Positions 1-50,868 of a stretch of 64,000 bases of DNA are shown here, one piece after another; positions within the stretch are counted from its first letter, which is position 1; every line of letters begins with the position of its first letter. The position numbers and the translations under genes are program-made. Under the pieces are notes generated by a model that was not told where the DNA came from, made no database searches, and saw only the letters and a list, made by a program, of their open reading frames with translations. Location of the stretch: NCBI GenBank assembly GCA_964035545.1, contig OZ037770.1:11552463-11616462 (forward strand), written 5' to 3'. This stretch comes from Bugula neritina. Lineage: Eukaryota > Animalia > Bryozoa.

Positions 1-3000
1 CCACCAGAAGATGACCATCTCGGACTACAGAATACAAGCCAAGAGACTGGAGAAAAGAATTTGTCCCAAACACACAGCATATCCCTACATACAAGGATGT
101 AGAGTCTGTGCTCAGCTGTTCTGTGTGCAGTGTGTATCTCGGACTAACTTTTGTGTTGGAGGTAAAAGAATCTACTGAAAGTTATTTGCTAAACGTTGGG
201 AAATTTGACAAACTATATTACTTATCTCAGTAACTCTTGTAATAAAGCTGTCTCCTCCAGCAATCAAACTTCAGTCCTCCAACTAGCAAGCTAACGCGCT
301 ACCCATTACACTATGAGGGCTACTAGGGTGTCACAACACTAAAAATCTGAAGCTAGTATAGAGAAATGGTTTGCTAACTTTACTTATGGTAGAATTATCT
401 AACTCGTTATTTTTAAACTAGAGATTCAGCAGTAGGTAAATAATTTTTGAATTATAAAATGTAGTCAATTGAACATTTAAAATAAAAATTAGAGATAATG
501 AATGTAGGACAATAGTAAGACATTTATGATGATATATATTAATAATTATTTTATGTAGCTAGTATTATGTCTATTAGTATAGATAAAAACCCCTCATTTC
601 GTCAAGTCCGCACATTTAATGCAAAAGCTGTACAAGTAGTGGTTATGAGTGCTGTATTCCGTCAAATCTGAGTGAATTTTTGTAAATTCAAATGTCACTC
701 ACTTATACAGCCTGTCTAAGCTTTGTCACGATTTTGCCACGGTGAAGTTTAGTTTTTATTTTCATTTTAGACTCACCACACCACATGGTTAATCTAGATG
801 ATTTAATCAAAGAGCTTATCAAAATAGATGATCTTCTCACCACTGAAGACAAGATGTCTGCTTTCTTCAAACACCTTTCTAAAACTGTGTCAGACTTTGA
901 TAATGAGACGGAGGAATTGCTGAATATTCTTCATACACAGCGTGATGAACAGGTTGTGTGTTTATAGAAAATACTTTCTGTTACTCTGTAATCTACATTC
1001 TGTAGTCAGGTGTTAGTAAAGCATTGTAATACTAATACTTAGGAGTAAAATTTAGGTAATTAGCTACTATTCTATGTGAATTATACCACTATTTTTTGTT
1101 TAAGGATTTAGGAATGTTATGCGAAATTATCTATGCTGTTTTTTGACATAATTCTGAAACACTTTCTCTAATTTGTTGTCCACTTTCTACAATGTGCTGA
1201 TACAATGTATGATGTAGTTGACTGAAATGAGACTAAAGTATGAGAAACTGGAGAAGGAATTCTTAGCTAGTAGAAAGAAGACTAAAGAGGAACTGAACAG
1301 ATACATGGAGAGAGAAGTTGGAACTGTTTTGTCTCAACTGAGTAACAGTAGAATGAAGATAGACGCTCAACTTAGACAAAACCATCAGGTGAGCAGTGTT
1401 CACCATCTGTTTATATTTAGAATATATTTAGAATATATTTAGAATATTGTTTTTATAGGTCTTTAAGAATGGCTATCGTGTGGCCCTATGCTAAGTTTAT
1501 CTTTTTCGTTTATTTCTGTTTCAGCTGTCCTACGATATTGAAAAATAAAATGAAAATAAAAGAATTTATACAAGTTATTATTTTACATTTGCAGCAATTT
1601 TCTTCACACCAGTCTTGATTATTTACTTCTTTTACAGGTCTATGGTTTTATGCAAAAGTGTAAACAATCTGCAAGCTATGACATCATAGCTGTATAGCTA
1701 TGACATCACATATGTATAGCTATGACATCATAGCTGTATAGTTATGACATCATAGCGGTATAGTAATGATGTCATAGCTGTATAGTTATGATGTCATAGC
1801 TGTCTAGTTATGACATCATAGCTGTATAGTTATGGCATCATATCTGTATAGTTATGGCATCATATCTGTATAGTTATGAAATCAGAGCTGTATAGTTATG
1901 ACATCATAGTTGTATAGTTATGACATCATATCTGTATAGTGATGATATCATATCATTTAGTTATGACATAGCTGTATAGTTATGACATCATAGCTGTATA
2001 GTTATGACATCATGATTATACAAATTAGTTAGACCAAGTAAAGTTGTAGTGATTAAAACCAGACCTAAAGAAAGACTTGAATTTGTTAATATCACAATTT
2101 CCACCTCCAGATTTTACCTTACAACTACACCTAGAAATAGATTACTATGTATAGTTTATATTAGTATTTGTTTGTCACCACATTTCTGTTCCGTGTGCAC
2201 CATATGTATTGTAATTAAGTGAAATTATCTCCACATAACTCTGTATGCTGATATTTGTTATATACTGTAGGTGGATCTGGTTGAAGGATTTGCAGAGATT
2301 AAAGACAGAATACAGAGACTGATATCTGTTGAGATACCTAAACTAAAGCTATGTGATGTCATGTCTCTAGAGGTCAAAGGTTAGTATACTAAACTAGAGC
2401 CGTGTGATGTCATGTCTCTAAAGGTCATTAATATTTGGCATTTTATTTGAAAAGTAACCTCATGTGTGTGAAACTATTGGTTTGAAAATTTTAGTTTCTG
2501 TTGAAATAGCTCTGTGTCTAGGTTTACTCAGAGCTTCTATTAATAGAATTTATACACATACTCACTATTATATGACATACATATTTTATATACATACTCA
2601 CTTATATATAAGTATACACACATACACACATATTCACATGTATATTGTAGAAGAGAAGAGAGATGTAGAAGTAGACTTGGTTCCTGCAGCAGACATGATT
2701 ATTAGTTTAAACCAAGGAGTGACAACTCCTACTCTTCCTAAATCAGCAGACATGATTATTAGTTTAGATCCTCCTGAATCTCTCAAACTCTTACAGTCTG
2801 TTGATGTTTCTAGTTACTGTTATTCTGTCTGTAAATATGAGGGTAACACTTATGTAGGGCTGAGTGGTGCAGGGATAGACAGAATAGATGAGAGTTTCAG
2901 TGTTTCCAAGTCATTTGTTTCTTTTACTGACTGGGTAACTGGAGTCACAGTACATAGGAATAAGCTGTATGCTCTACAGGGTATCAGCAGCACTAATAGG

Positions 3001-3669
3001 GAGGTACATGTGTATGATCTTACTGGGAAACAGGTGACCAGCTGGTCCCATCATGATAGTAGTGGGTATGTAAACAAACTTGCTATTGTTGATGATCAGG
3101 TTGTGGTTCCTAGTAGACACAGTAAAAGACTTACAATCTACTCTCTTACTGGGGAGGTAATTAAACATGTCTCCTGCCCTCTACTCAGTAGTTACCCTGT
3201 AGCAATATGTGCAGCAGACAGACATTGTGTAGTAGTTTCTGAAAAAGCTTCCTCTCAAGTATTTAAATTAGACTTGACAACAGAGAAAGTCATCTGGACA
3301 TGCAAGGATATATCTCGACCAGAAGGTGTGACCTGCTATAGAAGTAAATATATTCTTGTGACTAACCGCAGCAGTAAAACCACCATCTGGATACTGGATG
3401 TGGAAACAGGTTAGTATTAGATTGGTTAGTTAACTACTGTTACCAATATATTAGTATTTCTCACAGTCTCACACTATAAAATATACTATGCTATGTACTA
3501 GTGATGACACACTAATACATCATTTCCTGTTACAGGTACACAACTGTCCAAAGTAGAAGATCCAACTGATAGAGCTGAGAGTACTGTGTATGATCTTCAT
3601 GTGTATAAAGACACTCTGATTGTACCTAGATGTAATGAGAAGAAAGTTCTGTTTTACAAGCTAAACTAA
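1..3669 (+). CDS. TRIM-like gene copy 1 (5' end outside window): B-box2, coiled coil, NHL-like beta-propeller
   Basis: Exons <1-161, 771-952, 1218-1388, 2271-2379, 2651-3409, 3536-3669; GT-AG introns with consistent phases; ends ...KKVLFYKLN*. Paralogous to the complete copies downstream. Confidence 0.88.
245..320 (-). mobile_element. Degenerate tRNA-derived SINE head in TRIM intron 3 (paralogous copies ~26240-26315 and ~36080-36155)
   Basis: Minus strand GCCCTCATAGTGTAATGGGTAGCGCGTTAGC... has an A-box-like TAGTGTAATGG and only a decayed B box. Confidence 0.4.
1674..2015. repeat. 22-bp minisatellite (GCTGTATAGTTATGACATCATA)n in intron 5
   Basis: About 15 units here, about 3 units at ~17305-17365 and about 7 at ~37432-37580. 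Confidence 0.9.
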
Positions 3670-5355: not shown

Positions 5356-5570
5356 ATTGTTCACTGAACAATGAACTCAGTGACCTTGAACTTTGTGCTA
5401 CCCTTAACCATAATTTATTATTTCCAACCATAGTGAATAGTTTACTACATAGTTCAATGAACTAAAAACTAAAACATATAGTTCAATGGTTATGATGTGT
5501 ACTAGAGGTGTCCAAATCTAGGTACCAAAGCCGCAAGTGATGCCAAGCCCTTAAACCCCCCTCCCCCCCC

Positions 5571-5787
5571 TGTCGGTGAAAGGTTCTAGAAGTCCTTTGT
5601 TCTACTAGTATAAAAGGACACACATTTTAGAGCTTCAGTCACTTGCGGACTGGAGCTCACACTGGCTACTTCTCTCTACTACAATAAAGTACTGCAAGCA
5701 CACGGCAACCTCTCTCTCTTGTCTCTTCTATAGCAAGGAGTTATGTTCTCTGCCTGATTTCATTCTATAACCCACAAAACTACTACA
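5571..5787 (+). mobile_element. Probable solo or partial LTR
   Basis: TGT...ACA ends, TATAAAA at ~5608 and AATAAA at ~5683; absent from paralogous spacers. No TSD; it sits at the break of a deletion relative to the other spacers. Confidence 0.5.
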
Positions 5788-6391: not shown

Positions 6392-6403
6392 GGGGAATTC
6401 CCC
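6392..6403. promoter_or_regulatory. NF-kB/Rel-type palindromic site upstream of copy 2
   Basis: GGGGAATTCCCC inside a conserved CpG-richer ~270-bp module about 1.3 kb upstream of the ATG; GTAAGT donor-like sites follow at 6413 and 6541. Confidence 0.65.
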
Positions 6404-7693: not shown

Positions 7694-10600
7694 ATGGCTG
7701 CAGCAGAAGAAGTTGAGTGTGGATTCTGTTTACTAAAAGAAGGTTTAGAGAATCCCAAGTGTCTACCATGTGGTCATGTACACTGTTTACTGTGTCTTAC
7801 TCGTAATGTTGATGTGAATGACATGATCAGGTGTCCCTGGTGTAGGTAGGTTAGTTTTCTATAGGCAGAGCTGAGACATATTGTTGGTAAAAAAATAGTG
7901 ATTGACATCATGTGTTTTAACTTATACTGAATTTTTACATTACGTTATATATATTTTTAATTACTACTAAATAATTTTGTGTCTTGTCACAGGGAAGTGT
8001 TTGATGAGAGAGTGGAAAGTCTTCCATCTGCTGATGTAGCAGACAACTCCGTATCATGTGACGTCTGCACTAAAAAGGGACTGAAGAAAGTGCCAGCCAT
8101 CATATACTGTACTGTGTGCCGTAAACTCTTCTGCAGAGAACATGATGAGGTGATACTTTCATTAAATATTTCTTCAGTTGATGTTCAACACTGCATACTC
8201 TAACTCAGCCTCTGATTACATGTTGTTGTACTTGAATGTTGATTTATAAGAAAGCACTGAGAGATCATGTTTCACTTTTATCTGTTTTATCTGCTGTCAT
8301 GTAAACTGCACATTTATTTCTATACTTTGTGTTAGTATGGAATTTTTATGTTCCTATAGATATTTGTAAATGTTTATATCATGTATTTGTAAGTTTCGTT
8401 TTTTTTCCACAATATGGATAGTTGAGTTATATTTCTCAGTAAAGATGTATTCTGCTATATTCAGTCACATGATGACACCAATGATGACCACCAGAAGATG
8501 ACCATCTCGGACTACAGAATACAAGCCAAGAGACTAGAGAAAAGAGTTTGTCCCAAACACACAGCATATCCCTACATACAGGGATGTAAAGTTTGTGTAC
8601 AGCTGTTCTGTGCGCAATGCACATCTTGCACTAACTTTTGTTTCGGAGGTAAGAAAGTGCTGCTGAAAATTATTTACTAAATATTGATAAATCTGATAAG
8701 TTGTATAACTACCTCAGTAACTCTTGTAAGAAAGCTGCCCTCACCATGAATTGAACTGCAGACCTCTATCATGCAACTTCTACTATATGGGCTACTGGGT
8801 AATCACAGCACTACAAATTTGAAGCTAGCATAGATAAATGGTGTATTTTGAGTAGAACCTCTGTTCAAAGTGTACTTCATTATTTATTGAGAAATTTAGA
8901 AATAGGTGAATAATTCTTAAAATACAAAATAAATTAATTGAACATTTAAAATTGAAAAAGAGGTCAGAAGTCAGTGAATTGAAGTGCCTCTCACTCGCAC
9001 AGCGTGTCCAAAGTTTTATATTTTGTTTTTCAATGGCCACGCTGGAGTTTAGTTTTTCATTGTCATTTTAATTTTAGACTCACCCCATCACATGGTTAAT
9101 CTAGATGATTTAATCAAAGAGCTTATCAATATAGATGATCTTCTCTCCACTGAAGACAAGATGTCTGCTTTCTTCAAACACCTTTCTAAAACTGTGTCAG
9201 ACTTTGATAATGAGACGGAGGAATTGCTGAATATTCTTCATACACAGCGTGATGAACAGGTTGTGTGTTTATAGATAATACTTTGTGTTACTCTGTAATC
9301 TACGTTCTGTAGTCAGGTGTTAGTAAAACATTACAATACTAATACTTAAGAGTAACAGCTAGCTAACTAGCTACTATTCTGTGTGAATTAAACCACTATT
9401 TTTTGTTCAAGAATTTAGGAATGTTATGCGAAATTATCTATGCTGTTTTTTGACATAATTCTGAAACACTTTCTCGAATAAGTTGCCGATATTCTACAAT
9501 GTGCTGATACAATGTATGATGTAGTTGACTGAAGTGAGACTGAAGTATGAGAAACTGGAGAAGGAATTCTTAGCTAGTAGAAAGAAGAATAAAGAGGAAC
9601 TGAACAGGTACATGGAGAGAGAAGTTGAAACTGTTTTGTCTCAACTGAGTAACAGTAGAATGAAGATAGAAGCTCAACTTAGACAAAACCATCAGGTGAG
9701 CACTGTTCACCATCTGTTTACTAAATATATTTAAATTATTTTGTGCGTGTGAATGTTTAATAATGCACTAGCATGCTGTGTATACGTGAAATGCAACAAA
9801 ATTTTGAAGAACTTGTGACAGACTTAGATTGACCATCACAATGCTTGATTTATATTCATTTCTGTTTTAGCTCTATAGTTGTGTGCTTACAGAATTCGAT
9901 GTCCTCCAATATAGTAATTAAAAGAATTGTTTTATAGTTGTATTCTTCTAAGTTTGTATAGTTCACAACTTTCACCAAAATCTATATGTTCCTAAGTAGT
10001 ATACTAACTATAGTTTATCTAGATGGTTGATTCACTGCCATATGTTTGCACCAAGCTTTTTGCCCATTTGTAGCTTCATTTAAACTCACACACAAGAAAA
10101 AGTAGGAAGTTGTAACTAAAAAGGCTGTCTTTTTATTCCCACTTGCCAATGCTATGGTTATGTACTGTAGGTAGATCTGGTTGAAGGATTTGCAGAGATT
10201 AAAGATAAAATACAGAGACTGGTATCTGTTGAGATACCTAAACTAGAGCTGTGTGATGTCATGTCTCTAAAGGTCAAAGGTTAGTATACTAAACTAGAGC
10301 TGTGTGATGTCATGTCTCTAAAGGTCAAAGGTTAGTATACCTAAACTAGAGCTATGTGATGTCATGTCTCTAAAGGTCAAAGGTTAGTATGCTAAACTGC
10401 AAAATACTTGCACTATTATGTTTATATAAAACCTGTTATATCTGCATTGCATGATGTAAAATTCAGTATATTATCTGAAAAGTGCCCTCCATATGTGTGA
10501 AACTACTGGTTGTTCAATTTGAATATCTGTTGGAATAGCCTTGTGTGTAGGTTTACTCAGAGTTTCTATTAATAGAATTTATACACATACTCACCTTTAT

Positions 10601-11668
10601 ATGACATAAATATTTTATATACATACTCACCTATATATAAGTATACACACATACACACATATTCACATGTATATTATAGAAGAGAAGAGAGACATAGAAG
10701 TAGACTTGGTTCCTGCAGCAGACATGATTATTAGTTTAGATCAAGGAGCGACAACTCCTACTCCTCCTAAATCTCTCAAACCCTTGCAGTCTGTTGATGT
10801 TTCTAGTTACTGTTGGTCTGTCTGTAAATATGAGAGTAACACTTATGTAGGGCATGGTGGTGGTGCAGGAATAGACAGAGTAGATGAGAGTTTCAGTGTT
10901 TTCAAGTCTTTTATTTCTCTTACCAACTCTGTAACTGGAGTCACAGTACATAGGAATAAGCTGTATGCTCTAGAGCATATCAGCAGCGCTAGTTGGAAGA
11001 TACATGTGTATGATCTTACTGGGAAACAGGTGACCAGCTGGTCCCATCATGATAGTAGTTGGAGTGTAAACAAACTTGCTATTGTTGATGATCAGGTTGT
11101 AGTTCCTGATAGAGGCAGTAAGAGGCTTACAATCTACTCTCTTACTGGGGAGGTAATTAAGCATGTCTCCTGCCCTTTACTCAGTAGTAATAGTAATACA
11201 GCAATATGTGCAGCAGACAGACATTGTGTAGTAGTTTCTGACTGGGGTTCCTCTCAAGTATTTAAAATAGACTTGACAACAGCGAAAGTAATCTGGACAA
11301 GCAAGGATGTATCTCAACCACAAGGTGTGACCTGCTGTAGAAGTAAATATATTCTTGTGACTAACTGCAGCAGTAAAACCACCATCTGGATACTGGATGT
11401 GGAGACAGGTTAGTATTAGATTGGTTAGTTAACTACTGTTACCAATATATTAGTATTTCTCACAGTCTCACACTATAAAATATACTATGCTATGTACTAG
11501 TGATGACACACTAATACATCATTTCCTGTTACAGGTACACAACTGTCCAAAGTGGACGATCCAACTGATAGAGCTAGGAGTAGTGTGTGTGATCTTCATG
11601 TGTATAAAGACACTCTGATTGTACCTAGATACAATGAGAAGAAAGTTCTGTTTTACCAGCTAAACTAA
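7694..11668 (+). CDS. TRIM-like E3 ligase copy 2 (RING-Bbox-Bbox-coiled coil-NHL-like propeller), ~605 aa, intact
   Basis: Exons 7694-7845 (MAAAEEVECGFC..LPCGHVHCLLC..CPWCR, C3HC4 RING), 7993-8149 (CDVC..YCTVC..FC..H), 8465-8648 (CPKH..CKVCVQLFC..C), 9078-9259, 9525-9695, 10171-10279, 10680-11408, 11535-11668; total 1818 nt, in frame, all GT-AG. Confidence 0.92.
10229..10387 (+). repeat. 51-bp tandem repeat of the exon-6 3' end including its splice donor
   Basis: Unit TATACTAAACTAGAGCTGTGTGATGTCATGTCTCTAAAGGTCAAAGGTTAG; donors at 10280, 10331, 10383; 1-4 units in the other copies. Confidence 0.9.
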
Positions 11669-14600: not shown

Positions 14601-15876
14601 CTGAAGGCCAAGCTGAGAGCATGCCTCGGTGAAACTTCATTGTCCCTTTAATACAGTAATATACCTAACCACCCTGTGCTGTAGCATTTCTAGAGACTCC
14701 ATGTCAGAAGAGACACAAATATAAACTACTGAATTCTCTCATTACACTGAACTACATGGGATCTGAATACACTTTATAATATGTTCTCCTGTTTTATAAT
14801 ATAGAGTTGAGTGATATGGCTGCAGCAGAAGAAGTTGAGTGTGGATTCTGTTTACTAAAAGAAGGTTTAGAGAATCCCAAGTGTCTACCATGTAGTCATG
14901 TACACTGTTTACTGTGTCTTACCCGTAATGTTGATGTGAATGACATGATCAGGTGTCCCTGGTGTAGGTAAGTTAGTTTTCTATAGGCAGAGCTGAGACA
15001 TACTGTTCGTAAAAAAATAGTGATTTACATCATATGTTTTACTTTATACTGAATTTTTGCATTCCGTTATATATAGTTTCAATCATTACTAAATAATTAT
15101 GTGTCTTGTCATAGGGAAGTGTTTGATGTGAGAATGGAAAGTCTTCCATCTGCTGATGTAGTAGACAACTCCGTATCATGTGACGTCTGCACTAAGAAAG
15201 GGATAGAGAAAGTACCAGCAGTCATATACTGTACTGTGTGCCGTAAACTCTTCTGCAGAAAACATGATGAGGTGATACTTTCATTAAATATTTCTTCAGT
15301 TGATATTCAACACTGCATACACTAACTCAGCCTCTGATTACATATTGTTATACTTGAATGTTGGTTTGTCAGAAAACATTTAGAACTCATATTTTACTTT
15401 TGTTTTTTGTTTTTCAATAAATGTATATTCTGCTATATTCAGTCACATGATGACACCAATGATGACCACCAGAAGATGACCATCTCGGACTACAGAATAC
15501 AAGCCAAGAGATTGGAGAAAAGAGTTTGTCCTAAACACACTGCATACCCCTACATACAAGGATGTAAAGTCTGTGTTCAGCTGTTTTGTTTGAAGTGTGT
15601 CTCTTCAGGCAACTTGTGTGTTGGAGGTAAGAAAGTTCTGCTGAAGGTTATTTGATATTTAGTTTAGTATATCTAATAAACTATATAACCTCTTCAGTGT
15701 GGGAGAAGTGGGTGCAGTGTTGGAGAAATTGAGAATAGCCTGTGTTCTAGATTAGAAATATATCATGAGAAGTTATGCTCTAGCGAGAATTTCAACCTGC
15801 GCCCCAAACCAAAGTTTAGCAACAAAATTAAAGAGCTTAGTTTGCCTCAATTTCTCTACTACTAAATGATGTGCAA

Positions 15877-15975
15877 GCAGCTGTGGTGGTTAGAGCACTG
15901 ATATTAGTTTGAATCTCAGAAATAGTCAGTGGTTGAATTCCGAAGGTTATGATGTCAGGAATGGCTTCCCTGCAC
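15877..15975 (+). mobile_element. Degenerate tRNA-derived SINE in copy 3 intron 3
   Basis: GCAGCTGTGGTGGTTAGAGC head and TGATGTCAGGAATGGCTTCC core resemble the SINE at 56645-56824. Confidence 0.4.
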
Positions 15976-17888
15976 TTAGCCTACTTTAAACATCTATTTA
16001 ACGAGGGGTTCTCACACCCCTGAAACCTACATATTTCATTTGGAACTCTCACACTAATGGCAACTATAAAGTCATGTGAATTTTATGACCTCTTCAGTAA
16101 ATCTATGATTAGATAAAAACAGATAGACAGTAGAGTTTAAGTAGAAGTGCTATGAAACAATGTGTTTTATTATTACTTTGAGATCTATTATCTTCTCATA
16201 ACCTGTACATCTTGTCTGGAACTTGCCATTTCTATAACTCATTACATTTCTACTGTAGTCAGTGTTGCTTCAAATGTTGACTGCTTAAACAAAGAATTCA
16301 CTGACATATTAAACTTTATCCAGTGAGAAGAAATGAAAAGAACTGTTTCTATATATAATATTAGTTTGTTGTTTGTCCAGTAGTCATAGCATACCATATG
16401 GTGACATTTCAGCTTCTCACTACCTTCTTGTAGTACTGGCCTTTTAACTGTCTAACTACTGTGAGGTTATATTACTGTAGTGCTATCAGGTTAGTGAAAT
16501 GTGGGCTATTTTTCATTTACTCTCATTTCAATTTTAGACTCTAAACATGACATGGTTAATCTAGATGACTTAATCAAAGAGCTTATCAATATAGATGATC
16601 TTCTCACCACTGAAGACAAGATGTCTGTTTTCTTCAAACACCTTTCTAAAACTGTGGCAGACTTTGATAATGAGACGGAGGAATTGCTGAATATTCTTCA
16701 TACACAGCGAGATGAACAGGTTCTGTGTTTATAGAAAATACTTTGTGTTACTCTGTAATCTACATTCTGTAGTCAGGTGTTAGTAAAACATTGCAATACT
16801 AATACTTAAGAGTAACAGCTAGGTAACTAGCTACTATCTGTGTGAAGTATACCACTATTTTTTGTTTAAGGATTTAGGAGTGTTATGCGAAATTACCTAT
16901 GATGTTTTTTGATCTAATTCTGAAACACTTTCTCGAATATGTTGTCCACTTTCTACAATGTGCTGATACAATGTATGATGTAGTTGACTGAAGTGAGACT
17001 AAAGTATGAGAAACTGGAGAAAGAATTCTTAGCTAGTAGAAAGAAGACTAAAGAGGAATTGAACAGATACATGGAGAGAGAAGTTGGAACTGTTTTGTCT
17101 CAACTGAGTAACAGTAGAATGAAGATAGAAGCTCAACTTAGACAGAGTCACCAGGTGAGCAGTGTTCACCATCTGTTTATGAAATATGTATATAATCTTG
17201 TTTTCTTTCTCCCAATCTCTAATCATTTACTTTCTTCATCCAGCCTTGATCATTTACTTCTTTTACAGCGTCATGGTTTTATGCAAAAGTGTAGACAATC
17301 TGCAAGCTATGACCTCATAGCTGTATAGCTATGACATCATAGCTGTATAGTTATGACATCATGATTATACAATTTTGTCAGCCCAAGTAAAGTTATAGAG
17401 CTTAAAATTTGGCTTAAAGCAAGATCTAAATTTGTGAATGTCACAATTTCCACCTCCAAATTTCACCTTACAACTACACTTTAAAATAGAATATTATGCA
17501 TAGTTTATATTAGTATCTGTTTGTTACCACATTTGTGTTCGGTGTGCACCATATGTATTGTAATTGCGTAACATTATGTAAACATGCACAGCGCTGAGGT
17601 TTCTAATTAAGTGAAGTTATCTCCACATAACTCTGTATGCTGTTTGTTATATACTGTAGGTGGATCTGGTTGAAGGATTTGCAGAGATTAAAGACAGAAT
17701 ACAGAGACTGATATCTGTTGAAATACCTAAACTAGAGTTGTGTGATGCCATGTCTCTAAAGGTCAAAGGTTAGTATACTAAACTAGAGCTATGTGATGTC
17801 ATGTCTCTAAAGGTCAAAGGTTAGTATACTAAACTAGAGCTGTGTGATGTCATGTCTCTAAAGATCAAAGGTTAATATACTAGACATG

Positions 17889-19411
17889 CACGGGCTTTCC
17901 ATGTACCGATCTGAGACATGTGCTCAGATCGATCGTTTTTCCATGAGAGTGTCAGATCGATCTCGCGAAATTGCCTCCTCTTAAAGGATTGCTCTATCTT
18001 AGTTTATTACAATCACATTATAATTATGAACTATAATCTAATGTGTATGCAAACAATTGTGACTTTGCAAAGGGATATATGCCTAGAAAACAGCTTTTCA
18101 AAATTCCAATTTTGAGGGAGGTAAAATTTTCAGCCATGAAAAAGAATAGCCTAATACGTGACGTGTGAACGCCAGTAACTATGCTGCACGTGCTAACAAT
18201 AACGCTAGTATTCAAGGTTGCTGAGCTCAGCATCAACCAATCACGCTCAAGCAGTTACAGTGTGCTATATAGGTTAGCTTTGGTGCGCCCGTAATATTGC
18301 ACAATCTGACCTAGTTTAGATCGATCGCAGGCATTCATCCTAAAGAATGCATGTTTTTGCAATGCTTTTTTCTATGCTTACAAGCAAAATATGGCCTAAT
18401 GTTATCACATACATGTTATTTAACATGTCAAAAAACTATAGATTGAGATAATTCACATTTGCACTTCTATAAATATACAAATTACGAGCTGAAAGATCAC
18501 ATCTCACAGTCATATTTCTATAGTTATTCATTTGTATAGTCACGTGACCAGCAGGAATGCTGGCGTTGTTACGTCACACTTCCCAGCTCATTTCAAAATC
18601 GGCGTTTTGGCTGTTACCAATCTACACCCTCAACTTCAACTAACTTTTTCTACCTTTGGTCATATGCTTTTTGTCAATGCATGCTTAGAAAAACACAATA
18701 TTATGTGTGTTTGACCTAAATGGCCATTTATTAGACAAGATAGAGCAATCCTTTAAGTGAAGGATACTTTGAAAGTATAATTTGTTCACCTATTTGAGTG
18801 ATTAAAGCTACTACTGTTGAAAACAAGGTGGTAGTAATCTAAAATTTAATCCTAGCTATAAACTATACGCAGCAAAGCTTTCAGTGTATGGTAATTTGGC
18901 CAATTTAAAATAAATAATTTTAATTTTTTAGCTTGACAGCTTATATAAAATTAATGGCTGTCTTGCAGATTATTAATAAACTTACAGGACTGTTAGGCCT
19001 AAAATTACAAAGAAAATAGCTAATGAAACTAAGTTTTAATAGTCATTTAAATTCAATTTAAATTCTCCCATTTTTTTTACCTTCTGCTGCATATAATTTA
19101 GTTTTCTTAATCATAGTACTGAAAGTCAAAGTTTTGGCATCTGAAAAAGTGGCTATCATAATTATTTAATATTTTGCTTAGTAATTATCAATAAGTTATC
19201 ATTTTTATTAGCAGACAACATTGTAGCACACAGTCCTTTTCTACTTCTCAGATCGATCTAGCGTCTTTCCATGGTCTTATTGACATGAGATCGATCTGAG
19301 TTCGAGCTCCACAGACCGACCAGCTCAGATCGACTGAGATCGATCTTTGGCGTCTTTCCATGGATCGTTCTAGCTGAGATCGATCTGAGATCGGTACATG
19401 GAAAGCCGGTG
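17889..19411. mobile_element. Family A DNA transposon (opposite orientation to the 28026 copy) in copy 3 intron 6, with a nested element
   Basis: CACGGGCTTTCCATGTACCGATCT ... AGATCGGTACATGGAAAGCCGGTG, flanked by ATG on both sides; followed by a residual extra TIR end GAAAGCCCGTG (19415-19425). Confidence 0.88.
17985..18752. mobile_element. Non-autonomous TTAA-targeting transposon with AGG...CCT ends (Kolobok-like), nested in family A
   Basis: TIR AGGATTGCTCTATCTT / AAGATAGAGCAATCCT, TTAA on both sides; the other family A copies have a single TTAA at this site. Confidence 0.85.
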
Positions 19412-23895: not shown

Positions 23896-23907
23896 GGGGA
23901 ATTCCCC
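23896..23907. promoter_or_regulatory. NF-kB/Rel-type site upstream of copy 4
   Basis: GGGGAATTCCCC in the same conserved module. Confidence 0.65.
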
Positions 23908-33315: not shown

Positions 33316-33327
33316 GGGGAATTCCCC
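33316..33327. promoter_or_regulatory. NF-kB/Rel-type site upstream of copy 5
   Basis: GGGGAATTCCCC in the same conserved module. Confidence 0.65.
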
Positions 33328-35041: not shown

Positions 35042-38000
35042 ATGGCTGCAGCAGAAGAAGTTGAGTGTGGATTCTGTTTACTAAAAGAAGGTTTAGAGAA
35101 TCCCAAATGTCTACCATGTGGTCATGTACACTGTTTACTGTGTCTTACTCGTAATGTTGATGTGAATGACATGATCAGGTGTCCCTGGTGTAGGTAAGTT
35201 AGTTTTGTATAGGCAGAGCTGAGACATACTGTTGGTAAGGAGTTAATGATTTACATCAGATGTTTTACCTTATACTGAATTTTTACATTACGTTATATAT
35301 ATTTTAGATTATTACTAATTAATTATGTGTCTTGTCACAGGGAAGTGTTTGATGTGAGAGTGGAGAATCTTCCATCCGCTGATGTTGCAGACAACTCCGT
35401 ATCATGTGACGTCTGCACTAAAAAGGGGCTGAAGAAAGTACCAGCCATCATATACTGTACTGTGTGCCGTAAACTCTTCTGCAGAAAACATGATGAGGTG
35501 ATACTTTCATTAAATACTTCTTCAGTTGATGTTCAACACTGCATACTCTAACTCAGCCTCTGATTACATATTGGTGTACTTGAATGTTGATTTATAAGAA
35601 AGCACTGAGAGATCATGTTTCACTTTTATCTGTTGTATCTGCTCTCATGTAAACTGCACATTTATTTTTAGACTTTGTGTTAGTGGGAATTTTTATGTTC
35701 CTATAAATATTTGTAAATGTTTATATCATGTATTTGTAAGTTTCGTTTCTTTTCCACTATATGGATAGATGAGTTATATTTCTCAGTAAATAAATATCCT
35801 GTTATATTCAGTCACATGATGACACCAATGATGACCACCAGAAGATGACCATCTCGGACTACAGAATACAAGCCAAGAGACTAGAGAAAAGAGTTTGTCC
35901 CAAACACACAGCATATCCCTACATACAAGGATGTAGAGTCTGTGTTCAGTTATTCTGTATGCAGTGCGTATCTCAGACTAACTTTTGTGTTGGAGGTAAG
36001 ATGGTCTACTGAAATTTATTTGCTAAACGCTGGGAAATTTGATAAACTATATTACTATCTCAGTAACTCTTGTAATAAAGCTGCCTCCTCTAGGAATCAA
36101 ACTTCAGTCCTCCAACTAGCAAGCTAACGCGCTACTCATTACACTATGAGGGCTACTAGGGTATCACAACACTAGAAATCTGAAGCTAGTATAGAGAGAT
36201 GGTTTACTAACTTTACTTATGGTAGAATTATCTAACTCGTTATTTTTAAATTAGAGATTCAGCAGTAGGCAAATAATTTTTAAGTTATGAAATGTAGTCA
36301 ATTGAACATTTAAAATAAAAATTAGAAATAATAAATGTAGGACAATAGTAAGGCATTTATGATGAAATATAATAATAATTATTTTATGTAGCTAGTATTA
36401 TGTCTATTAGTATAGATAAAAGCTTCCCATTTTGTCAAGTCTGCACACTTAATGCAAAAGCTGTACAAATAGTGGTTATGAGTGCTCTATTCCGTCAAAT
36501 CTGAGTGAATTTTTGTAAATTCAAATGTCACTCACTTGTACAGCCTGTCTAAGCTTTGTCACGATTTTGCCACGGTGAAGTTTAGTTTTTATTTTCATTT
36601 TAGACTCACCACACCACATGGTTAATCTAGATGATTTAATCAAAGAGCTTATCAATATAGATGATCTTCTCACCACTGAAAACAAGATGTCTGCTTTCTT
36701 CAAACACCTTTCTAAAACTGTGTCAGACTTTGATAATGAGACGGAGGGATTGCTGAATATTCTTCATACACAGCGTGATGAACAGGTTCTGTGTTTATAG
36801 AAATACTTTCTGTTACTCTGTAATCTACATTCTGTAGTCAGGTGTTAGTGAAGCATTACAATACTAATACTAATGAGTAACAGTTAGGTGACTAGCTACT
36901 ATTCTGTGTGAATTAAATCACTGTATTTTGTTTAAAAAGTTGCAACTTTTAAAATCAAATCTGAAAACTTTTTCTAATAAGTTGTCAATATTCTGCAATG
37001 TGCTGATACAATGTATGATGTAGTTGACTGAAGTGAGACTAAAGTATGAGAAACTGGAGAAGGAATTCTTAGCTAGTAGAAAGAAGACTAAAGAGGGACT
37101 GAACAGATACATGGAGAGAGAAGTTGGAACTGTTTTGTCTCAACTGAGTAACAGTAGAATGAAGATAGAAGCTCAACTTAGACAAAACCATCAGGTGAGC
37201 AGTGTTCACCATCTGTTTATAAAATATATTTAGAATATTGTTTTTATAGGTTTTTAAAAATAACTAAGCTTGCCTTTGTCATTTATTTCTGTTTCAGATT
37301 TACTTCAATATAAAAAAAAGTGAAAATAAAATAATTTACACAACTTATTGTTTTACATTTGCTGCAACTATCTTCACACCAGCCTTGATTATTCACTTCT
37401 TTTACAGCTGTAAAAGTGTTAACCACCTGCAAGCTAGGACATCATATCTGTATAGTTATAACATCAAATCCGTATAGTTATGGCATCATATCCGTATAGT
37501 TATGGCATCATATCCGTATAATTATGACATCATAGCTGTATAGTTGTGACATCATAGCTGTATAGTTATGAAATCATGATTATACAATTTTGTCAGCCCA
37601 AGTAAAGTTGTAGAGCTTAAGACTTGGCTTAAAGCAAGACTTGAATTTGTGAATGTCACAATTTCCACCTCCAAATGTCACTTTACAAACACACTTTGAA
37701 ATAAAATATTATGTATAGTTTATATTAGTATTTGTTTGTCACCACATTTGTGTGTAACATATGTATTATAATTGGTAATGTTGACATTTTTATGCATATC
37801 GTTATGTAAACATACACAGGGCTGACAACAGTTATTAAATGAAGTTATCTCCACATATCCCTGCATGCTGATGTTTGTTATATACTGTAGGTGGATCTGG
37901 TTGAAGGATTTGCAGAGATTAAAGAGAGAATACAGAGACTGATATCTGTTGAGATACCTAAACTAGAACTATGTGATGTCATGTCTCTAAAGGTCAAAGG

Positions 38001-39369
38001 TTAGTATACTAAACTAGAGCTGTGTGATGTCATGTCTCTAGAGGTTAAAGGTTAGCACACTAAGCTGGAGATTCTAGCGCACACACAGTATTATACTACT
38101 AATATTTTTAAAAGCTTCTAATAATCATGTATCTGCATTATATAATATAACGTATGAACTTTAACATTTGGCATCTTATCTGAAAATTAACCCCATGTGT
38201 GTGAAACTATTGGTTGGAAAATTTGAATATCTGTTCAGATAGCCCTGTGTGTAGGTTTACTCAGAGTTTCTATTAATAGAATTTATACACATACTCACTT
38301 TTATATGACATACATATTTTATATACATACTCACTTATATATAAGTATACACACATACACACATATTCACATGTATATTGTAGAAGAGAAGAGAGATGTA
38401 GAAATAGACTTGGTTCCTGCAGCAGACATGATTATTAGTTTAGAACAAGGAGTGACAACTCGTACTCTTCCTAAATCTCTCAAACTCATACAGTCTGTTG
38501 ATGTTTCTGATGAATGTTATTCTGTCTGTGAATATAAGGATAGCACTTATGTAGGGCTGGCATATGGTGCGGGGATAGACAGAATAGATGAGAGTTTCAG
38601 TGTTTCCAAGTCTTTTATTTCTCTTACTTCCTATGTAACTGGAGTCACAGTACATGGGAATAAGCTGTATGCTCTACAGGGTATCAGCAGCACTAATTGG
38701 GTGGTACATGTGTATGATCTTACTGGGAAACAGGTGACCAGCTGGTTTCACCATGATAGTAGTTACTGTGTAAACAAACTTGCCATTGTTGATGATCAGG
38801 TTGTGGTTCCTGATAGACACAGTAAAATACTTACAATCTACTCTCTTACTGGGGAGGTAATTAAACATGTCTCCTGCCCTCTACTCAGCGATAGTAATAC
38901 AGCAATATGTGCAGCAGACAGACATTGTGTAGTAGTTTCTGACTCTGGTTCTTCTCGAGTATTTAAATTAGATTTGACAACAAAGAAAGTCATCTGGACA
39001 TGCAAGGATGTATCTCATCCAGAAGGTGTGACCTGCTATAGAAGTAAATATATTCTTGTGACTAACTGCAGCAGTAAAACCACCATCTGGATACTGGATG
39101 TGGAGACAGGTTAGTTTTACATTGGTTAGTTAACTACTGTTACCAATATATTAGTATTTCTCACAGTTTCACACTATAAAATATACTATGCTATGTACTA
39201 ATGATGACACACTAATACATCATTTCCTGTTACAGGTACACTACTGTCCAAAGTAGAAGATCCAACTGATAGAGCTAGGAGTGGTGTGTGTGATCTCCAT
39301 GTGTATAAAGACACTCTGATTGTACCTAGATACAATGAGAAGAAAGTTCTGTTTTACCAGCTAAACTAA
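35042..39369 (+). CDS. TRIM-like E3 ligase copy 5, ~604 aa, intact
   Basis: Exons 35042-35193, 35341-35497, 35812-35995, 36604-36785, 37024-37194, 37891-37999, 38384-39109, 39236-39369; in frame, GT-AG. Confidence 0.92.
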
Positions 39370-43044: not shown

Positions 43045-43054
43045 GGGAATTCCC
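43045..43054. promoter_or_regulatory. NF-kB/Rel-type site upstream of copy 6
   Basis: GGGAATTCCC retained in a more diverged version of the module. Confidence 0.6.
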
Positions 43055-44225: not shown

Positions 44226-44303
<78 letters not shown>

Positions 44304-44700: not shown

Positions 44701-45149
44701 GATACTAATATAAACTATGTATAGTTTATATTAGTATCGGTTTGTTATCACATTTGTGTTCCGTGTGTACCATGTGTATTGTAATTGGTAATGTTGACAT
44801 TTTTATGTGTAACGTTATGTAAAACATACACAGCGTTAAAGACTCTAATTAAGTGAAGTTATCTCCACATAACTCTGTATGCTAATGTTTGTTACATACT
44901 GTAGGTGGATCTGGTTGAACGATTTGCAGAGATTAAAGATAAAATACAGAGACTGATATCTGTTGAGATACCTAAACTAGAGCTGTGTGATGTCATGTCT
45001 CTAAAGGTCAAAGGTTAGTATACTAAACTGTAAATTCCTTGTGCTATTTTTCTAGTGCTGAATTTGTTATAAACTTTAGGTTGGGTAAGCTGTAACATCT
45101 CTATTATAGTGATATAATGTGATATTGTTCTAGAGCAGTCACACACTTT

Positions 45150-46995
45150 TACATCACTGATATTATTAAAATGTTTGTATTAATCATGTACCGCCGTGGT
45201 CCTGCGCGGGTGGCAAGTTTCTGCTTGATACCAAGTTCTACCAGACATCTCCATCGAACTCGATCTTCAGCATCTGCGCCATCTAGATCAAGATCAAGCC
45301 ATCTAAAGTCTGAGTTTATTATATCATACCATCTTTGCTTTGGTCTACCCCTAAGTCGAGCTCCTTCAACTGTCATCTCTGACACTCTCCAGATGCCATC
45401 CTCACTTTCTCTCTGTCAAAAATGCCCATACCACTGCATTCGTCTCTTCCATATCAGGTCTTTAATCGGCATCACTCTGGCCTCTGCTGCTATTTCCTCA
45501 TTTGGCTTATGATTTTCTAAACTGATATTCAAGCAGTGTCACAACATGTGCATCTCACAGAATGACATCTTATCAGCCAGAGATCTTGTGATGGGCCATG
45601 TCTCATTTTCATATAGCAAGGTTGATCTGGTAGCTATTTTATAAATCAGCACTTTCAGTTTTGCGGGCATTTTCTTGTCACAGAGCACACCAGACAGCTC
45701 TCTCCACTTATTCCAAGCTTTGGATATTCTCAGCTCAATCTCCCTCCAGCAACCTCCCTCTTGGTGGATTGTTGTACTTGAATTTGGAACCTTTAGGCAG
45801 GCTTTCCATTTCTTGACAACCATACTTCTTTATCCTGATATTTTCTTGGGCTCCAACTGCTGGCAAATGCTCTGTTTTCTTTCGGCTTACTTTCAATCCC
45901 GCTGCCTCTATTTTCTCTCTGCAGATCTCAAACCTTCTTTCTAATCTCTCTATTACTATCGCAAAGGACCAGATCATCAGCAAGTAGCATTGCCCATGAG
46001 CTGTCCTCATTGATATCTTCTGCTAGAACATCCGTAATTATAATAAATAGCAGTGGGCTTAGTGCCAATCCCTGATATAATCCAACTTCAATATGGATTT
46101 TGCTTGTCAACCTGGAGTTTGTCCTAACACTGGTGCTGCAGTCTTCGTACATGTCCTTTATGATGTTGTTGTACTGCTCTGGAACCAACCGTTTCCGTAA
46201 GCAGTACCATATTAGCTCATGCGGTGTGGTGTCATAGGCTTTTTCAAGGCCCATGAACACCATATGAAGCGCTTTGTTGTACTCTCTGTGCTTTTCTTGC
46301 AGTATTCTGAGGCAGAACATAGGTTCTGTAGTTGATTTCCCCTTCTGAAATCCATACTGGTTTTGCTTGATTGTGACTAATTCTCAGATTCTCTGTGCAA
46401 TGATCCTTTCTAATAGTTTAAGGCAGTGGCTTAGCAGTTTTGTCCCCCAGTAGTTTCAACAGTCTAGAGGGTCTCCTTTTTGCTTATATATTGGAAGTTA
46501 TCGTGCGCTCTCTCCAGTCTGGTGGTATCTTTTCAGAGATGATATTGTTCAAACACGCTGTTATCCAGGTGTTTCCTCTCTCTTTCAGCAACTTTATGAT
46601 GTCAATTGGTAGCTGGGCTAGCCCTGTGGTTTGTTGGTTTTCATCTTTCCTATCACGGTGTTGACTTCGTCTTCATGGATTTTGGGTATTGGTCTTTGCA
46701 CTGTTGACTGCCGGGCAGTTCCTCCCTGCTGTTCTCATTATTTAGTAGACCATTGAAGTGCTTTTTCCATATCTTTTTGATTTCCTCATCTTCAGACAGG
46801 ATCTTTCCATCTACGTCCTTGACAAAAGGTATTCTGTCAATATCCTTAGATCTCCAGTGTCTAGTTTTAGCTAGGCAGTGGATGATCTTTGGTCCATTCT
46901 TGTCTAATTCATCATATAAGTTTTCTGATGCTGCTTGTTTTGCTATGGCTACCTTTTCCTTGCTTGTCCTGTTCAGGCTGGTGTATCGTTATATA
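45150..46995 (-). mobile_element. 5'-truncated, frameshifted RTE-clade non-LTR retrotransposon (RT fragment) in copy 6 intron 6
   Basis: Fragments HMVFMGLEKAYD, GLYQGLALSPLLFII, WAMLLADDLV, AWNKWRELSGVLCDKKMP, GARLRGRPKQRW are characteristic of RTE ORFs; split over several frames. Confidence 0.9.
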
Positions 46996-47976
46996 TTGTA
47001 ATATATGAACATAAATATTCAGGCATATTATCTAAAAAGGGCTGTTCATGTGTGTGAAACTACTGGTTAGATAATCTGATTATCTGTCGAAATAGCTCTG
47101 TGTGTAGGTTTACTCAGAGTTTCTATTAATATAACTTATATACATACTCACTTTTATATGACATACATATTTTATATACATACTCACTTATATACAAGTA
47201 TACACACATACACACATATTCACATGTGTATTGTAGAAGAGAAGAGAGATGTAGAACTAGACTTGGTTCCTGCAGCAGACATGATTACTTGTTTAGATCT
47301 TCCTAAATCTCTCAAACTCTCAAAGTCCGTTGATGTTACTAATAGGTGTTCTTCTGTCTGTAAATATGAGGGTAACACTTATGTAGGGCTGTATGGTGCA
47401 GGGATAGGCAGGATAGATGAGAGTTTCAGTGTTTCCAATTCATTTGCCTCTATTACTGACAATGTAAATGGACTCGCAGTACATAAGAACAAGCTGTATG
47501 CCGTACAGCAGATCAGCTACAATAATTGGATAGTACGTGTGTATGATCTTACTGGGAAACAGGTGACCAGCTGGTCCCATTATGATAGTGGTGGTGTAAA
47601 CAAACTTGTTATTGTTGATGGCCAGGTTGTAGTTCCTGATAGAGGCAGTAAAAGACTTACAATCTACTCTCTTACTGGGGAGGTAATTAAACATGTCTCC
47701 TGTCCTATGCTCAGCTATAGCAGTACAGCAATATGTGCAGCAGACAGACATTGTGTAGTAGTTTCTGACTATGGTTCCTCTCAAGTATTTAAATTAGACT
47801 TGACAACAGAGAAAGTCATCTGGACATGCAAGGATGTATCTCATCCGCAAGGTGTGACCTGCTATAGAAGTAAATACATTCTTGTGACTAACAGCAGCAG
47901 TAAAACTACCATCTGGATACTGTATGTGGAGACAGGTTAGTTTTACATTGGTTAGTTAACTACTGTTACCAATATA

Positions 47977-48915
47977 TGTGATGGCTGCTGTCATTTTTGG
48001 TCTCTTGGGGGTCATCCAAGATTTTTACTTTTTAATGTGGATGAATAGAGTAGGACTTTGTGATCACATTGCACTTTAAATTTTTAACATCAGTCAAATA
48101 GAACCAGAAATATGCTAGGTTATACACACAGCGGTCCACAACAAACGACTTTTATTATTGCGAGTAATTAACAGTCAAAGTTCGGCGACTCAAAATTGTA
48201 CTAAATTCGTTGTTTATCTACCTAGCAACAGTGTCTTCAATTAGCTCCATCAGCCCAAAAGTTAATTACCAGGGGTGGTTTTTTATGCTGATCATGAAAA
48301 TATTAATTTAAAATTCATATCTGCAATGTCTTAATCAATATTTCAGAGTTGAGTTCAGTATAATGAGAACATTTTGATGATTATCCTGAGAGATTAATAC
48401 TATAATGCCACGTGGTTTCATAATAAAATCAAACTATTTTGCATCACTGTTGTCACTAAGTTCATCATTACTATTATCACCACTACTCTTCAGTCCTTGT
48501 CCTTAATTTTCAATGTAGAAACATTCTTTTAAATTGTCAATATCTGTTATCTATTAACTTGCAGCGCGATCCAGTCGCCATGTTTATTACTAGTAACAAT
48601 TCTCAGTCAAATTATACCTAACTACGTTGCGCTCTACACTACGCCGCTATTTTAACTATTGTTAAAGGTCGCGCTATTATGCTCTAATCACGTGACCAGC
48701 TTGCCTACCATGGAATGGCTCATTAAAACACCAATCATTTCTAAACCATAGCAGATATCACAAAACTGATTGGACAGCTGGAAAGAGCACATGTTAATTG
48801 ACTATTGCACACTAAAAGCAAAAATTCACCTATTTATGAGAACTATAGATAAAACCCCTTATAACTAACAATAGCGAATAATGCCAAGAGACCAAAACTG
48901 ACGGGAGCCATCACA
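47977..48915. mobile_element. Non-autonomous DNA transposon (TA TSD) in copy 6 intron 7
   Basis: TIR TGTGATGGCTGCTGTCATTTTTGGTCTCTTGG / CCAAGAGACCAAAACTGACGGGAGCCATCACA; empty site ACCAATATATTAGT in other copies. Confidence 0.88.
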
Positions 48916-50868
48916 TATTAGTATTTCTCAGAGTCTCACACTATAAAATATACTATGCTATGTACTAGTGATGACACACTCATACACCATTTCCTGTTAC
49001 AGGTACACTACTGTCCAAAGTAGAAGATCCAACTGGTAGAGCTGAGAGTAGTGTGTGGGATCTTCATGTGTATAAAGACATTTTGATTGTCCCCAGACGT
49101 AAAGAGAAGAAAGTTCTATTTTACCAGCTAAACTAAACAGGTGTGTGACAGGATATTATTCTATCTTGTGGTACATTTATTATACTTTTTATCATACTAG
49201 ACTCTGTTTGAATACATCTGGTGCTCAACTCTGTGTTTTCTACTAATGTACATATTTGTGATGATATATCTGAGATGTACAACTTCTACATATACACTGT
49301 GTCTGTTATTTCTAGATGATTCCCAAAGTTGACTCGGTCGACTGAGCACTTTAACACAGAGCTATGATAGAGTGTGAAAGACAGTATGACTTATAGACAA
49401 ACATATTTAATTTCAACTTTCAAGTAGAAGTTATTTTATTTATACCTAACACAATTGGAATGATTTCAACGTATAAGCTAAATCAACTGGAACTTGAGAA
49501 TGTCTATAAAATCTTGAAGCTGAACGTAAAGATGGTGGTAACTTTATATCTATTGAACCAGAACCCTTTAGTTCAGCGGTGGTAACTCTATTTCTATATC
49601 TACTTCGACGTATTGGTTTATATTGAAAGTCATTTAGAGTAGTAATAGTTGTAACTTTTAATTTGTATCTGTAAAGGCTGAAATGCATCGTATTGAAGAC
49701 TTTTTTTTAAAATATCAACTATCTGTGTTTTTTTATCAAAAGCTAAATTAATGTTTCCTGTAACATACCAACATGTTGTACATTGATTACGTAATGCTGC
49801 GTAACTACTCTATCAACAAATACCAACCACTGCTACATTCTTATTCTTATATTTTTGGCAAGACAACATTATACCTAACATATTTATTTTGAAATGTTAA
49901 AGGTAGTAGTTGATGTGATAAAATAAAATCAGAACGCAATGTTTGTGCTCAGAAGCTTCCCTATGCAATACCTACTAAGTGGCAACCACTAGTACATTCA
50001 ATTCACTGTGACTGTTTTACATATAATTTAGCTTTGAAACTGTAAGGCTCATGTGATAAAGTGCATATTAGGAAGTTACCCATATTTTCTTTATTACAAT
50101 GCAAGGTCAATAGATCTTAAGTTTCCTGTAATGTGGAGTCTAGGGCCTTTATCTATGGCTATAAAGATTATCTGATTGGGTCTCTCAATATAATCATACA
50201 GGTTAATATGACAGTTTAATGCATAGCTGCTTTTTTCACACCAAGTTGGTGAATAATGGCATGCTATCTTTTATAAGTATAGTGCATAGTTGTCACTATA
50301 CATAAATTTTATCATCCATATATGAAGGGTACTGTGATTTGTCATATTTTTCAGACTCACTCCAAAGAAATCAATTCAGTGAAAAACATCGCATTTAGCT
50401 ACCTTTTTCTAACAACCTTTTGGTTCTTTTAGGACTTTGAGGGCACCTAAGAGACCTCTGATAAACTTTAGGAACTGTATAAAATGCAAAGATAGGTTAA
50501 TATGATGTCCAATTTCAATATCAGCAATCCCAAACTTTTTGATGTAAGTAGAGTTGTCTACACCAGAAAAACGAATGATTTTGTATTGGTGCGGTAATTT
50601 ATCGGTTTGGCTATAAAACTAGAACGATAGAAAGCTCTTTGGTTAAATTTTACTAGATTTGACTCTTTTATGCCAAAGGCCGTAAATCTTTCTTTGTGCC
50701 AATCATAATAAAAAATACGCTAGTACAATAGTATCATTATGTGGTAGTACTAGTAGAAGTATAGTCAGACTCATGGTGTAACTGTAATTAATTAATAAAT
50801 TCCATCATTATAACATTATGATTATAAATAAATATTATGTGTGCACACAAAAGTTATAGTTAACTATC

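Follow-up and report, generated by a model that had tools for sequence, protein, structure and literature searches.

The window, a 64-kb stretch of DNA analysed here as a whole, is the 3' end of a tandem array of 18 TRIM units in a Bugula-type bryozoan, and the patches that distinguish the gene copies are under positive selection on the top face of a C-terminal domain modelled as a propeller. We read these genes, with a probability of roughly 0.6, as a germline-encoded repertoire of E3 ligases for intracellular recognition that is probably inducible by NF-kB. The array continues ~123 kb upstream of the window. One unit comprises eight exons encoding a RING/B-box/B-box/putative coiled-coil/six-blade-propeller protein of ~605 aa. 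Across the whole genome, ~150 exon-7 matches were retrieved, and the TRIM ubiquitin-ligase genes number more than 100. Watersipora also has relatives of the array genes. Among 29 fetched units, 10 were broken and 19 were intact paralogues; this sample does not extend to ~14 units at C6:10.30-10.49 Mb or to any other cluster.

The earlier note on this DNA had described a six-copy array. Six copies are present, but a splice donor is lost in copy 3 and copy 6 lacks exons 1-5, leaving only copies 1, 2, 4 and 5 intact. The copies in the window are as follows.

1..3669, + strand: copy 1, intact, exons 3-8 in the window (exons 1-2 upstream of it)
Copy 1 exons: e3 to 161, e4 771-952, e5 1218-1388, e6 2271-2379, e7 2651-3409, e8 3536-3669
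7694..11668, + strand: copy 2, intact and used as the reference gene, encoding 605 aa, introns all GT-AG, phases consistent, single stop
Copy 2 N-terminal exons: e1 7694-7845 (RING), e2 7993-8149 (B-box1), e3 8465-8648 (B-box2)
Copy 2 helical/coiled-coil exons: e4 9078-9259, e5 9525-9695, e6 10171-10279
Copy 2 propeller exons: e7 10680-11408 (linker and blades 1-5), e8 11535-11668 (blade 6)
10766..11407, + strand: propeller part of copy 2 exon 7, with hypervariable top-face d-a and b-c loops and selected sites; AF2 pLDDT 93.6
14816..20711, + strand: copy 3, probable pseudogene or truncated product, exon-7 donor GT>CT at 20452
25203..30115, + strand: copy 4, intact
35042..39369, + strand: copy 5, intact
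44905..49136, + strand: copy 6, RING-less remnant with exons 6-8 only (e7 47237-47935, e8 49003-49136)

The RING exon of copy 1 lies just outside the window (-791..-640), and its protein is identical to that of copies 2, 4 and 5; the identity of these last three, and a G>S change in copy 3, had been reported earlier and agree with our re-reading. In copy 3, an in-frame stop immediately follows the lost exon-7 donor, so that blade 6 would be lost. Exons 1-5 of copy 6 were deleted between ~43900 and ~44700; its intron 6 holds an RT fragment and its intron 7 is longer by ~0.9 kb. An intact gypsy element with 99.5% identical LTRs occupies positions 50868-55220 of the window, and other LTR elements are found in introns.

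The C3HC4 RING ligands (C9, C12, C26, H28, C31, C34, C47 and C50) and Arg51 are invariant in 18 of the 19 intact copies. One otherwise intact copy lacks one RING cysteine, and the remaining zinc ligands are invariant across the intact copies. The copy 2 match to Pfam zf-C3HC4_2 (E=2e-4) is under the cut-off. The ligand patterns of B-box1 and B-box2 are likewise invariant, with weak Pfam B-box matches below the cut-off, and B-box2 is present as several divergent types. A Watersipora homologue weakly matches TRIM2, TRIM28 and TRIM56 chains. The putative coiled-coil segment, 134 aa with one Pro and one Gly, has a best hydrophobic period of 3.7, a weak signal; homologues give coiled-coil-type Pfam matches. 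The scaffold had been called invariant, which overstates the case: given an omega of 0.2-0.45, divergent B-box2 types and the lost RING cysteine, it is constrained only. By their RING motif, the proteins are putative E3 ubiquitin ligases.

Searches and folds were run exon by exon, and it is a natural homologue from Watersipora that supports the closed six-blade fold. The full propeller model of this homologue has 24 strands and a pLDDT of 96.7, and its top five structural matches, Brat (Z 28.9), TRIM2 (28.8), Mei-P26 (28.6), Lin41 (27.7) and TRIM71 (27.6), are all TRIM-NHL domains. Look-alikes of the propeller in the Atlas carry PF01436, which is also precomputed on two homologues; the Pfam NHL profile gave E ~0.09 in two homologues and no match in copy 2 exon 7. 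According to the models, the C-terminal domain is a six-bladed NHL-type propeller, and it stands in the place of a B30.2 (PRY-SPRY) domain, which was not found at the C-terminus.

The six exon-7 patch series listed earlier for copies 1-6, and the exon-8 series Y/C/Y/F/C/W, all read as described, and the in-frame propeller indels within the window fall in or beside the b-c and d-a loops. Codon models were fitted to the 19 intact paralogues with our own implementation, using proportional branch lengths. The LRT was 218 for M2a versus M1a and 217 for M8 versus M8a, with an omega of 5.4-7.2 on 11-15% of propeller sites. With per-blade trees it was 139-184, and with multi-nucleotide changes allowed it was 139. 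With the top face defined as for Brat (PMC4015489), 19 of the 20 sites with a posterior >0.95 for omega>1 map to it, as the earlier note had proposed in assigning the patches to a single surface of the propeller. The clustering exceeds chance, with at least four amino acids at 24/67 top-loop positions versus 3/36 bottom-loop positions, and scatter of the variable sites over the fold is excluded.

Surface loops of a redundant tandem array could also vary through relaxed constraint or mutational hot spots, in which case the apparent omega>1 would stem artefactually from gene conversion, errors of alignment and multi-nucleotide mutation. Recombination is present, one third of the units are broken, and allowing site rate variation lowers the LRT from 218 to 46. 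Averaged over all top-face codons, omega is only 1.2-1.3 (p ~0.05), so the selection signal comes from ~20-35 codons; the class average for top loops is 1.34 (p=0.06). Nevertheless, an LRT of 44 (p ~3e-10) persists when recombination partitions, multi-nucleotide changes and rate variation are modelled jointly and gap-flanking columns are removed, which excludes dN/dS<=1 at the variable sites and bears out the diversifying selection proposed earlier. Bottom loops are equally exposed and have an omega of ~0.5-0.7, while tree-length dS is similar in top loops (1.27) and strand cores (1.17). Intron 7, within the propeller, diverges by only 5.7%. The pattern repeats in other clades and in a sister Bugula lineage, three clades of which have their variable face on the same top face (p<=1e-3 each). 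Selected sites are biased towards Tyr (16% versus 0.2% elsewhere in loops) and Trp (5% versus 0). The Tyr and Trp enrichment once ascribed to the patches thus stands, but that of Ser and Asn does not, as neither exceeds other loop positions at selected sites. Relaxed constraint or artefact is already largely refuted and highly improbable; the top-face patches evolve under positive selection despite the recombination, multi-nucleotide and rate-variation controls.

Trees of different regions reject one another (AU p<0.01), nearest-neighbour copies differ from region to region, and blade pairs appear to have been shuffled among copies. A PHI-like test gave p=0.0005 on all sites and p=0.89 on synonymous-only codons (46 sites); incongruence among trees is therefore the main evidence for recombination, and convergent changes can exaggerate it. 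The array undergoes birth and death.

At seven loci, strong kappa-B 11/12-mers were found upstream of genes of the family, some of them from subfamilies only 36-49% identical. Those in the window carry no strand assignment.

6392..6403 (copy 2): palindromic kappa-B consensus, 1.3 kb 5' of the ATG
23896..23907 (copy 4): upstream kappa-B palindrome
33316..33327 (copy 5): upstream kappa-B palindrome
43045..43054 (copy 6): kappa-B core within the upstream module that this copy retains, neighbouring donor degraded

The GT donor adjoining the site at 6392..6403 is probably that of a non-coding first exon. No kappa-B module was detected within 3 kb of copy 3 or of half of the fetched copies, and among recent copies site conservation does not exceed that of the flanks (0.95 versus 0.92). 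Rel-domain genes are present in the genome, with a Rel protein encoded at C9:4.69 Mb. As to expression, RNA-like runs contain just 12-17% of words, a hint only. The kappa-B sites lend indirect support to an immune or stress role.

Alternatively, the biochemistry could be the same but the opponent endogenous: in budding stem cells or the germ line, the propellers would recognise proteins or RNPs of retrotransposons or other selfish elements. The array and its surroundings are rich in young LTR elements, although insertions are expected in any birth-and-death array. TRIM-NHL proteins regulate RNA pathways (PMC4015489); however, the net charge of the top face, -3 to +4 as counted from sequence and not from surface electrostatics, is not uniformly basic, unlike that of RNA-binding NHL domains. 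By this count, no conserved electropositive RNA-binding top surface was found, the top face being hypervariable. As the kappa-B sites point to inducible defence, we regard an endogenous opponent as rather unlikely.

JGI proteins were considered as alleles of the array genes and rejected, since non-coding DNA at a family locus present in single copy is only 80-88% identical; this suggests that they come from a sister or cryptic species. Best matches in the present genome to four sister-lineage proteins reach only 80-87%, whereas substrate receptors diversified to serve many endogenous targets (E3s of development or proteostasis, acting without an antagonist) would have fixed orthologues. TRIM-NHL proteins are usually developmental regulators (PMC4015489), yet with such fast turnover and omega far above 1 this role is very unlikely here. 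The animal is colonial, and homologues were found in symbiont-metagenome samples of the host, which would suit a role in telling self from non-self or in recognising symbionts (in colony fusion, in sperm-egg or brooding interactions, or in bacterial symbiont control) in place of pathogen restriction. Such systems are likewise under positive selection. To our knowledge, however, the allorecognition receptors described so far act outside the cell or at the membrane and vary allelically at few loci, whereas the array product has a TRIM architecture with the RING at its very start and varies among >100 paralogues. We consider this reading unlikely.

If the array does encode a repertoire of intracellular recognition E3 ligases, the propeller top face would bind a foreign ligand that changes fast and most likely is a protein of a pathogen or parasite. 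Through its coiled coil and B-boxes the TRIM protein would dimerise and cluster on its target, and the RING would ubiquitinate the target or build signalling chains. Tandem duplication, swaps of blade-sized segments among paralogues, point substitutions favoured by diversifying selection and copy loss would renew the repertoire. A more ambitious version envisages NF-kB-controlled, combinatorially shuffled, antibody-like receptors on the NHL propeller, with >100 germline faces that each link recognition of a different pathogen protein to ubiquitination, and with independent expansions in several lineages of bryozoans; we advance it tentatively, at slightly less than even odds.

Precedents are the finTRIM family (PMC2657112) and antiviral TRIM56, which has an NHL-like domain (PMC6623546). 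Like teleost finTRIM (ftr) and primate TRIM5alpha, the array genes form multigene clusters with a conserved RING/B-box and a positively selected C-terminal binding face. They differ in having an NHL-type six-bladed propeller instead of B30.2/PRY-SPRY, and in their bryozoan host; virus induction is shown for finTRIM, whereas upstream kappa-B motifs make the array genes candidates for it. With TRIM-NHL proteins (class C-VII or subfamily C: Brat, Mei-P26, TRIM2/3, TRIM32, LIN-41/TRIM71) they share the RING and B-boxes, followed by a putative coiled coil and a six-bladed propeller, and their variation lies on the surface corresponding to the top surface on which Brat binds its ligand (PMC4015489). 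However, known TRIM-NHL families have 3-5 conserved genes per genome and a basic RNA-binding top face, in contrast to >100 genes here and a face that varies, is rich in Tyr and Trp and carries mixed charge; identity to them is 13-16%, a filamin domain would not fit, and Pfam NHL matches are sub-threshold. TRIM56 resembles the array proteins in combining a TRIM with an NHL-like C-terminal domain without filamin, and its antiviral restriction needs E3 activity and the C-terminus (PMC6623546), but it is encoded by one mammalian gene, binds viral RNA and forms no multigene hypervariable repertoire.

In the literature searched, which excluded most subscription journals, we found no description of the TRIM-NHL array family, of any family of immune receptors from Bryozoa or of hypervariable recognition built on an NHL propeller scaffold. 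Hypervariable TRIM repertoires have so far been described from vertebrate B30.2 proteins. If our reading is true, a convergent NHL-propeller system in a lophotrochozoan would make a constant E3 with a variable C-terminal face a general design of intracellular immunity. The natural 250-residue propeller, fused to an E3 and tolerating variation in nearly all top loops, may be of interest as a binder scaffold. For a phylum with little-studied immunity, ~20 putative specificity residues are now listed, together with promoters that are candidate NF-kB targets.

Copy 2, one of six tandem TRIM-NHL units in the window, has eight exons, with GT–AG at every intron, agreeing phases and a 605-aa frame. 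Database searches were run per exon, the spliced 605-aa model being confined to scripts.

Features of copy 2 and of the surrounding sequence (window positions)
7694–11668, plus strand: copy 2, intact reference gene
Exon 1 of copy 2: C3HC4 RING
Exons 2–3 of copy 2: two B-boxes
Exons 4–6 of copy 2: probably the coiled-coil region
Exon 7 of copy 2: linker and blades 1–5
Exon 8 of copy 2: remainder of the propeller
45928–46320, minus strand: fragment of a reverse transcriptase, probably of non-LTR type, within intron 6 of copy 6
50868–55220: intact-looking Ty3/gypsy-type LTR retrotransposon, 197-bp LTRs 99.5% identical, with a single 1205-aa ORF (51299–54916) carrying RT, RNase H and integrase
59176–64000: dynein heavy chain gene flanking the array, represented by its 5' exons (DHC_N1 matches at 60408–60581 and 61333–61533)

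The intact units are copies 1, 2, 4 and 5. In copy 3 the exon-7 donor is lost (GT to CT at 20452) and an in-frame stop follows, while copy 6 lacks exons 1–5 and retains the upstream module. The final 51 bp of exon 6, donor included, are repeated two to three times in tandem (10234–10398, 17727–17882, 27872–28025 and 37958–38070); splicing at one of these potential in-frame donors would give a longer linker. Small RNA-like runs taken from three studies of this organism contained 12–17% of the words, which fits spliced paralogue transcripts and proves nothing.

The variable propeller patches listed in the earlier note all read correctly from the sequence. The RING scaffold, which it had called invariant, is constrained but not invariant: pairwise pN rises from 0.018 in the RING through 0.03–0.05 (B-box1 and coiled-coil exons) and 0.08 (B-box2) to 0.097 in the exon-7 propeller, and maximum-likelihood omega of the scaffold parts is 0.24–0.44. 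The B-box2 exon (exon 3 in all copies; 8465–8648 in copy 2) occurs as several divergent types shuffled among copies and has the highest pS of the gene (0.25). Introns 1–2 are about 18% divergent, against 7% synonymous divergence in the RING.

The exon-7 peptide is predicted to fold as a propeller of four-stranded blades (pLDDT 93.6), and a Watersipora homologue as a propeller closed by six blades (pLDDT 96.7). Among 48,161 chains, the five best structural matches of the latter were the NHL domains of Brat, TRIM2, Mei-P26, Lin41 and TRIM71 (Z 27.6–28.9, 13–15% identity). With the top face defined as published, by the d–a and b–c loops (PMC4015489), and strand limits taken from the model (by analogy for exon 8), positions with at least four residues number 24 of 67 in top loops and 3 of 36 in bottom loops.

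GY94 site models (own implementation) were fitted to 19 intact paralogues. M2a was preferred over M1a (LRT 218, omega 7.2 on 11% of sites, near-gap columns removed) and M8 over M8a (LRT 217). The LRT was 139–184 when each blade or blade pair had its own tree, 139 allowing double and triple changes and 46 under gamma rate variation; with all controls combined it was 44 (omega 5.2 on 15% of sites, p about 3e-10). The N-terminal half gave an LRT of only 16. Twenty sites had a posterior >0.95; 19 of them lie in top loops or at the upper ends of strands a, b and c, distributed over all six blades, which bears out the single selected surface proposed earlier. A non-circular class test gave a weaker signal, with omega of 1.34 in top loops (p=0.06), 0.66–0.71 on the bottom face and 0.34 in strand cores. 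dS is about equal in top loops and strand cores. Intron 7, inside the propeller, is only 5.7% divergent; the propeller region is therefore not simply older. That the pattern is an artefact or the product of relaxation is the least probable reading.

Tyr makes up 16% and Trp 5% of residues at selected sites, and two copies differ on average at 13.8 of the 19. Unlike Brat, whose RNA-binding top face is basic, these propellers have a top-face net charge from −3 to +4, a range that suggests ligands other than RNA, such as proteins. We consider diversification towards endogenous substrates quite improbable. Exchange of blade-sized segments is likely, though less firm than selection: the closest paralogue differs by region, pairwise distances of blade pairs show hardly any correlation (rho −0.05 to 0.24), and the scaffold tree and three blade-pair trees are mutually rejected (AU p<0.01). 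A recombination test on synonymous sites alone, which has little power, was not significant.

Exon 7 has 152 matches in the 216-Mb genome, a lower bound that includes fragments. The array extends about 123 kb further upstream (18 units, 12 intact); on the same contig (C6) are a second cluster of 10 units, 6 of them intact, at 9.10–9.21 Mb and another of about 15 at 10.30–10.52 Mb. Stops, a frameshift, insertions or deletions disrupt ten of the 29 fetched units. A 23.8-kb block containing two genes occurs twice at 99.7% identity (C6:11461000–11484776 and C6:11517361–11541144), either a very recent duplication or an assembly artefact; one of its introns, 8.7 kb long, holds an ORF of retroelement size. 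A probable non-autonomous transposon of about 0.7 kb is inserted at differing sites and orientations among units (window 4577–5355, 18749–19412, 28026–28802 and 40475–41148), and exon 7 of an upstream copy (locus L003, C6:11446449–11448891) is split by a 2.4-kb element bearing terminal inverted repeats. Control of selfish elements by the family is an unlikely explanation, if the likeliest of the alternatives.

The closest proteins traced come from a JGI sample tied to a Bugula neritina mitochondrial-genome accession; since its non-coding identity to this genome is 80–88%, it represents a sister lineage, a different population. In three clades of that lineage, too, the top face is the most variable part, with per-site entropy correlated with that in this genome (rho 0.45–0.61). 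Named full-length relatives are all from the bryozoan Watersipora subatra; by these affinities the host is probably a cheilostome of the Bugula type. A quick tree puts a branch with SH-aLRT 98 between the Bugula sequences and all 13 Watersipora proteins, which makes the two sampled expansions lineage-specific. A role in allorecognition or symbiont control is improbable, though less so than endogenous substrates.

No published description of this bryozoan TRIM-NHL family was found in the literature searched. In working pattern it resembles finTRIM and TRIM5 (PMC2657112, PMC3137616), but it falls outside both because its proteins have no B30.2 domain. The C-VII class and TRIM56 (PMC6623546) likewise join a TRIM to an NHL-type propeller, but their face is conserved and basic and their copy number low, neither of which applies here. 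We favour, at a probability of roughly 0.6, a family of TRIM proteins for recognition of foreign targets: the propeller top face of each would bind the target, the coiled coil and B-boxes would cluster the protein, the RING would ubiquitinate the target, and the repertoire would renew itself as genes duplicate, exchange segments, acquire selected substitutions and are lost.

A kappa-B palindrome lies at window 6392, upstream of copy 2, and 13 of 26 fetched copies have a kappa-B consensus 1.25–1.7 kb before the ATG, most with a GT donor beside it. Across the genome the 12-mer palindrome has 63 occurrences and its reversed control 1; for the 11-mer the counts are 300 and 26. With its flank the 12-mer is confined to the window array, and is therefore not a dispersed repeat there. 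Two of 50 non-palindromic 11-mer sites, besides those listed here, lie within 8 kb of RING exons.

Kappa-B sites ahead of family exons elsewhere in the genome
C6:10.35–10.52 and C3:30.84–30.85 Mb: eight 11-mer sites, 1.5–2.1 kb before RING exons
C2:28.55–28.57 and C7:11.63 Mb: three 11-mer sites, 4–7 kb ahead of propeller exons in subfamilies with only 36–40% identity
C5:16.41 and C4:12.83 Mb: 12-mer palindrome ahead of members

Seven loci have kappa-B near family genes, against about 0.6–1.2 expected (Poisson p 3e-6 to 3e-4), an enrichment that is supportive, not final, because the distance window was set after seeing the data and loci were tallied by hand. Rel-homology-domain genes are present at C9:4.69 and C1:16.85 Mb, and the genome-wide list of kappa-B sites can serve directly as a source of candidate NF-kB targets for this bryozoan.
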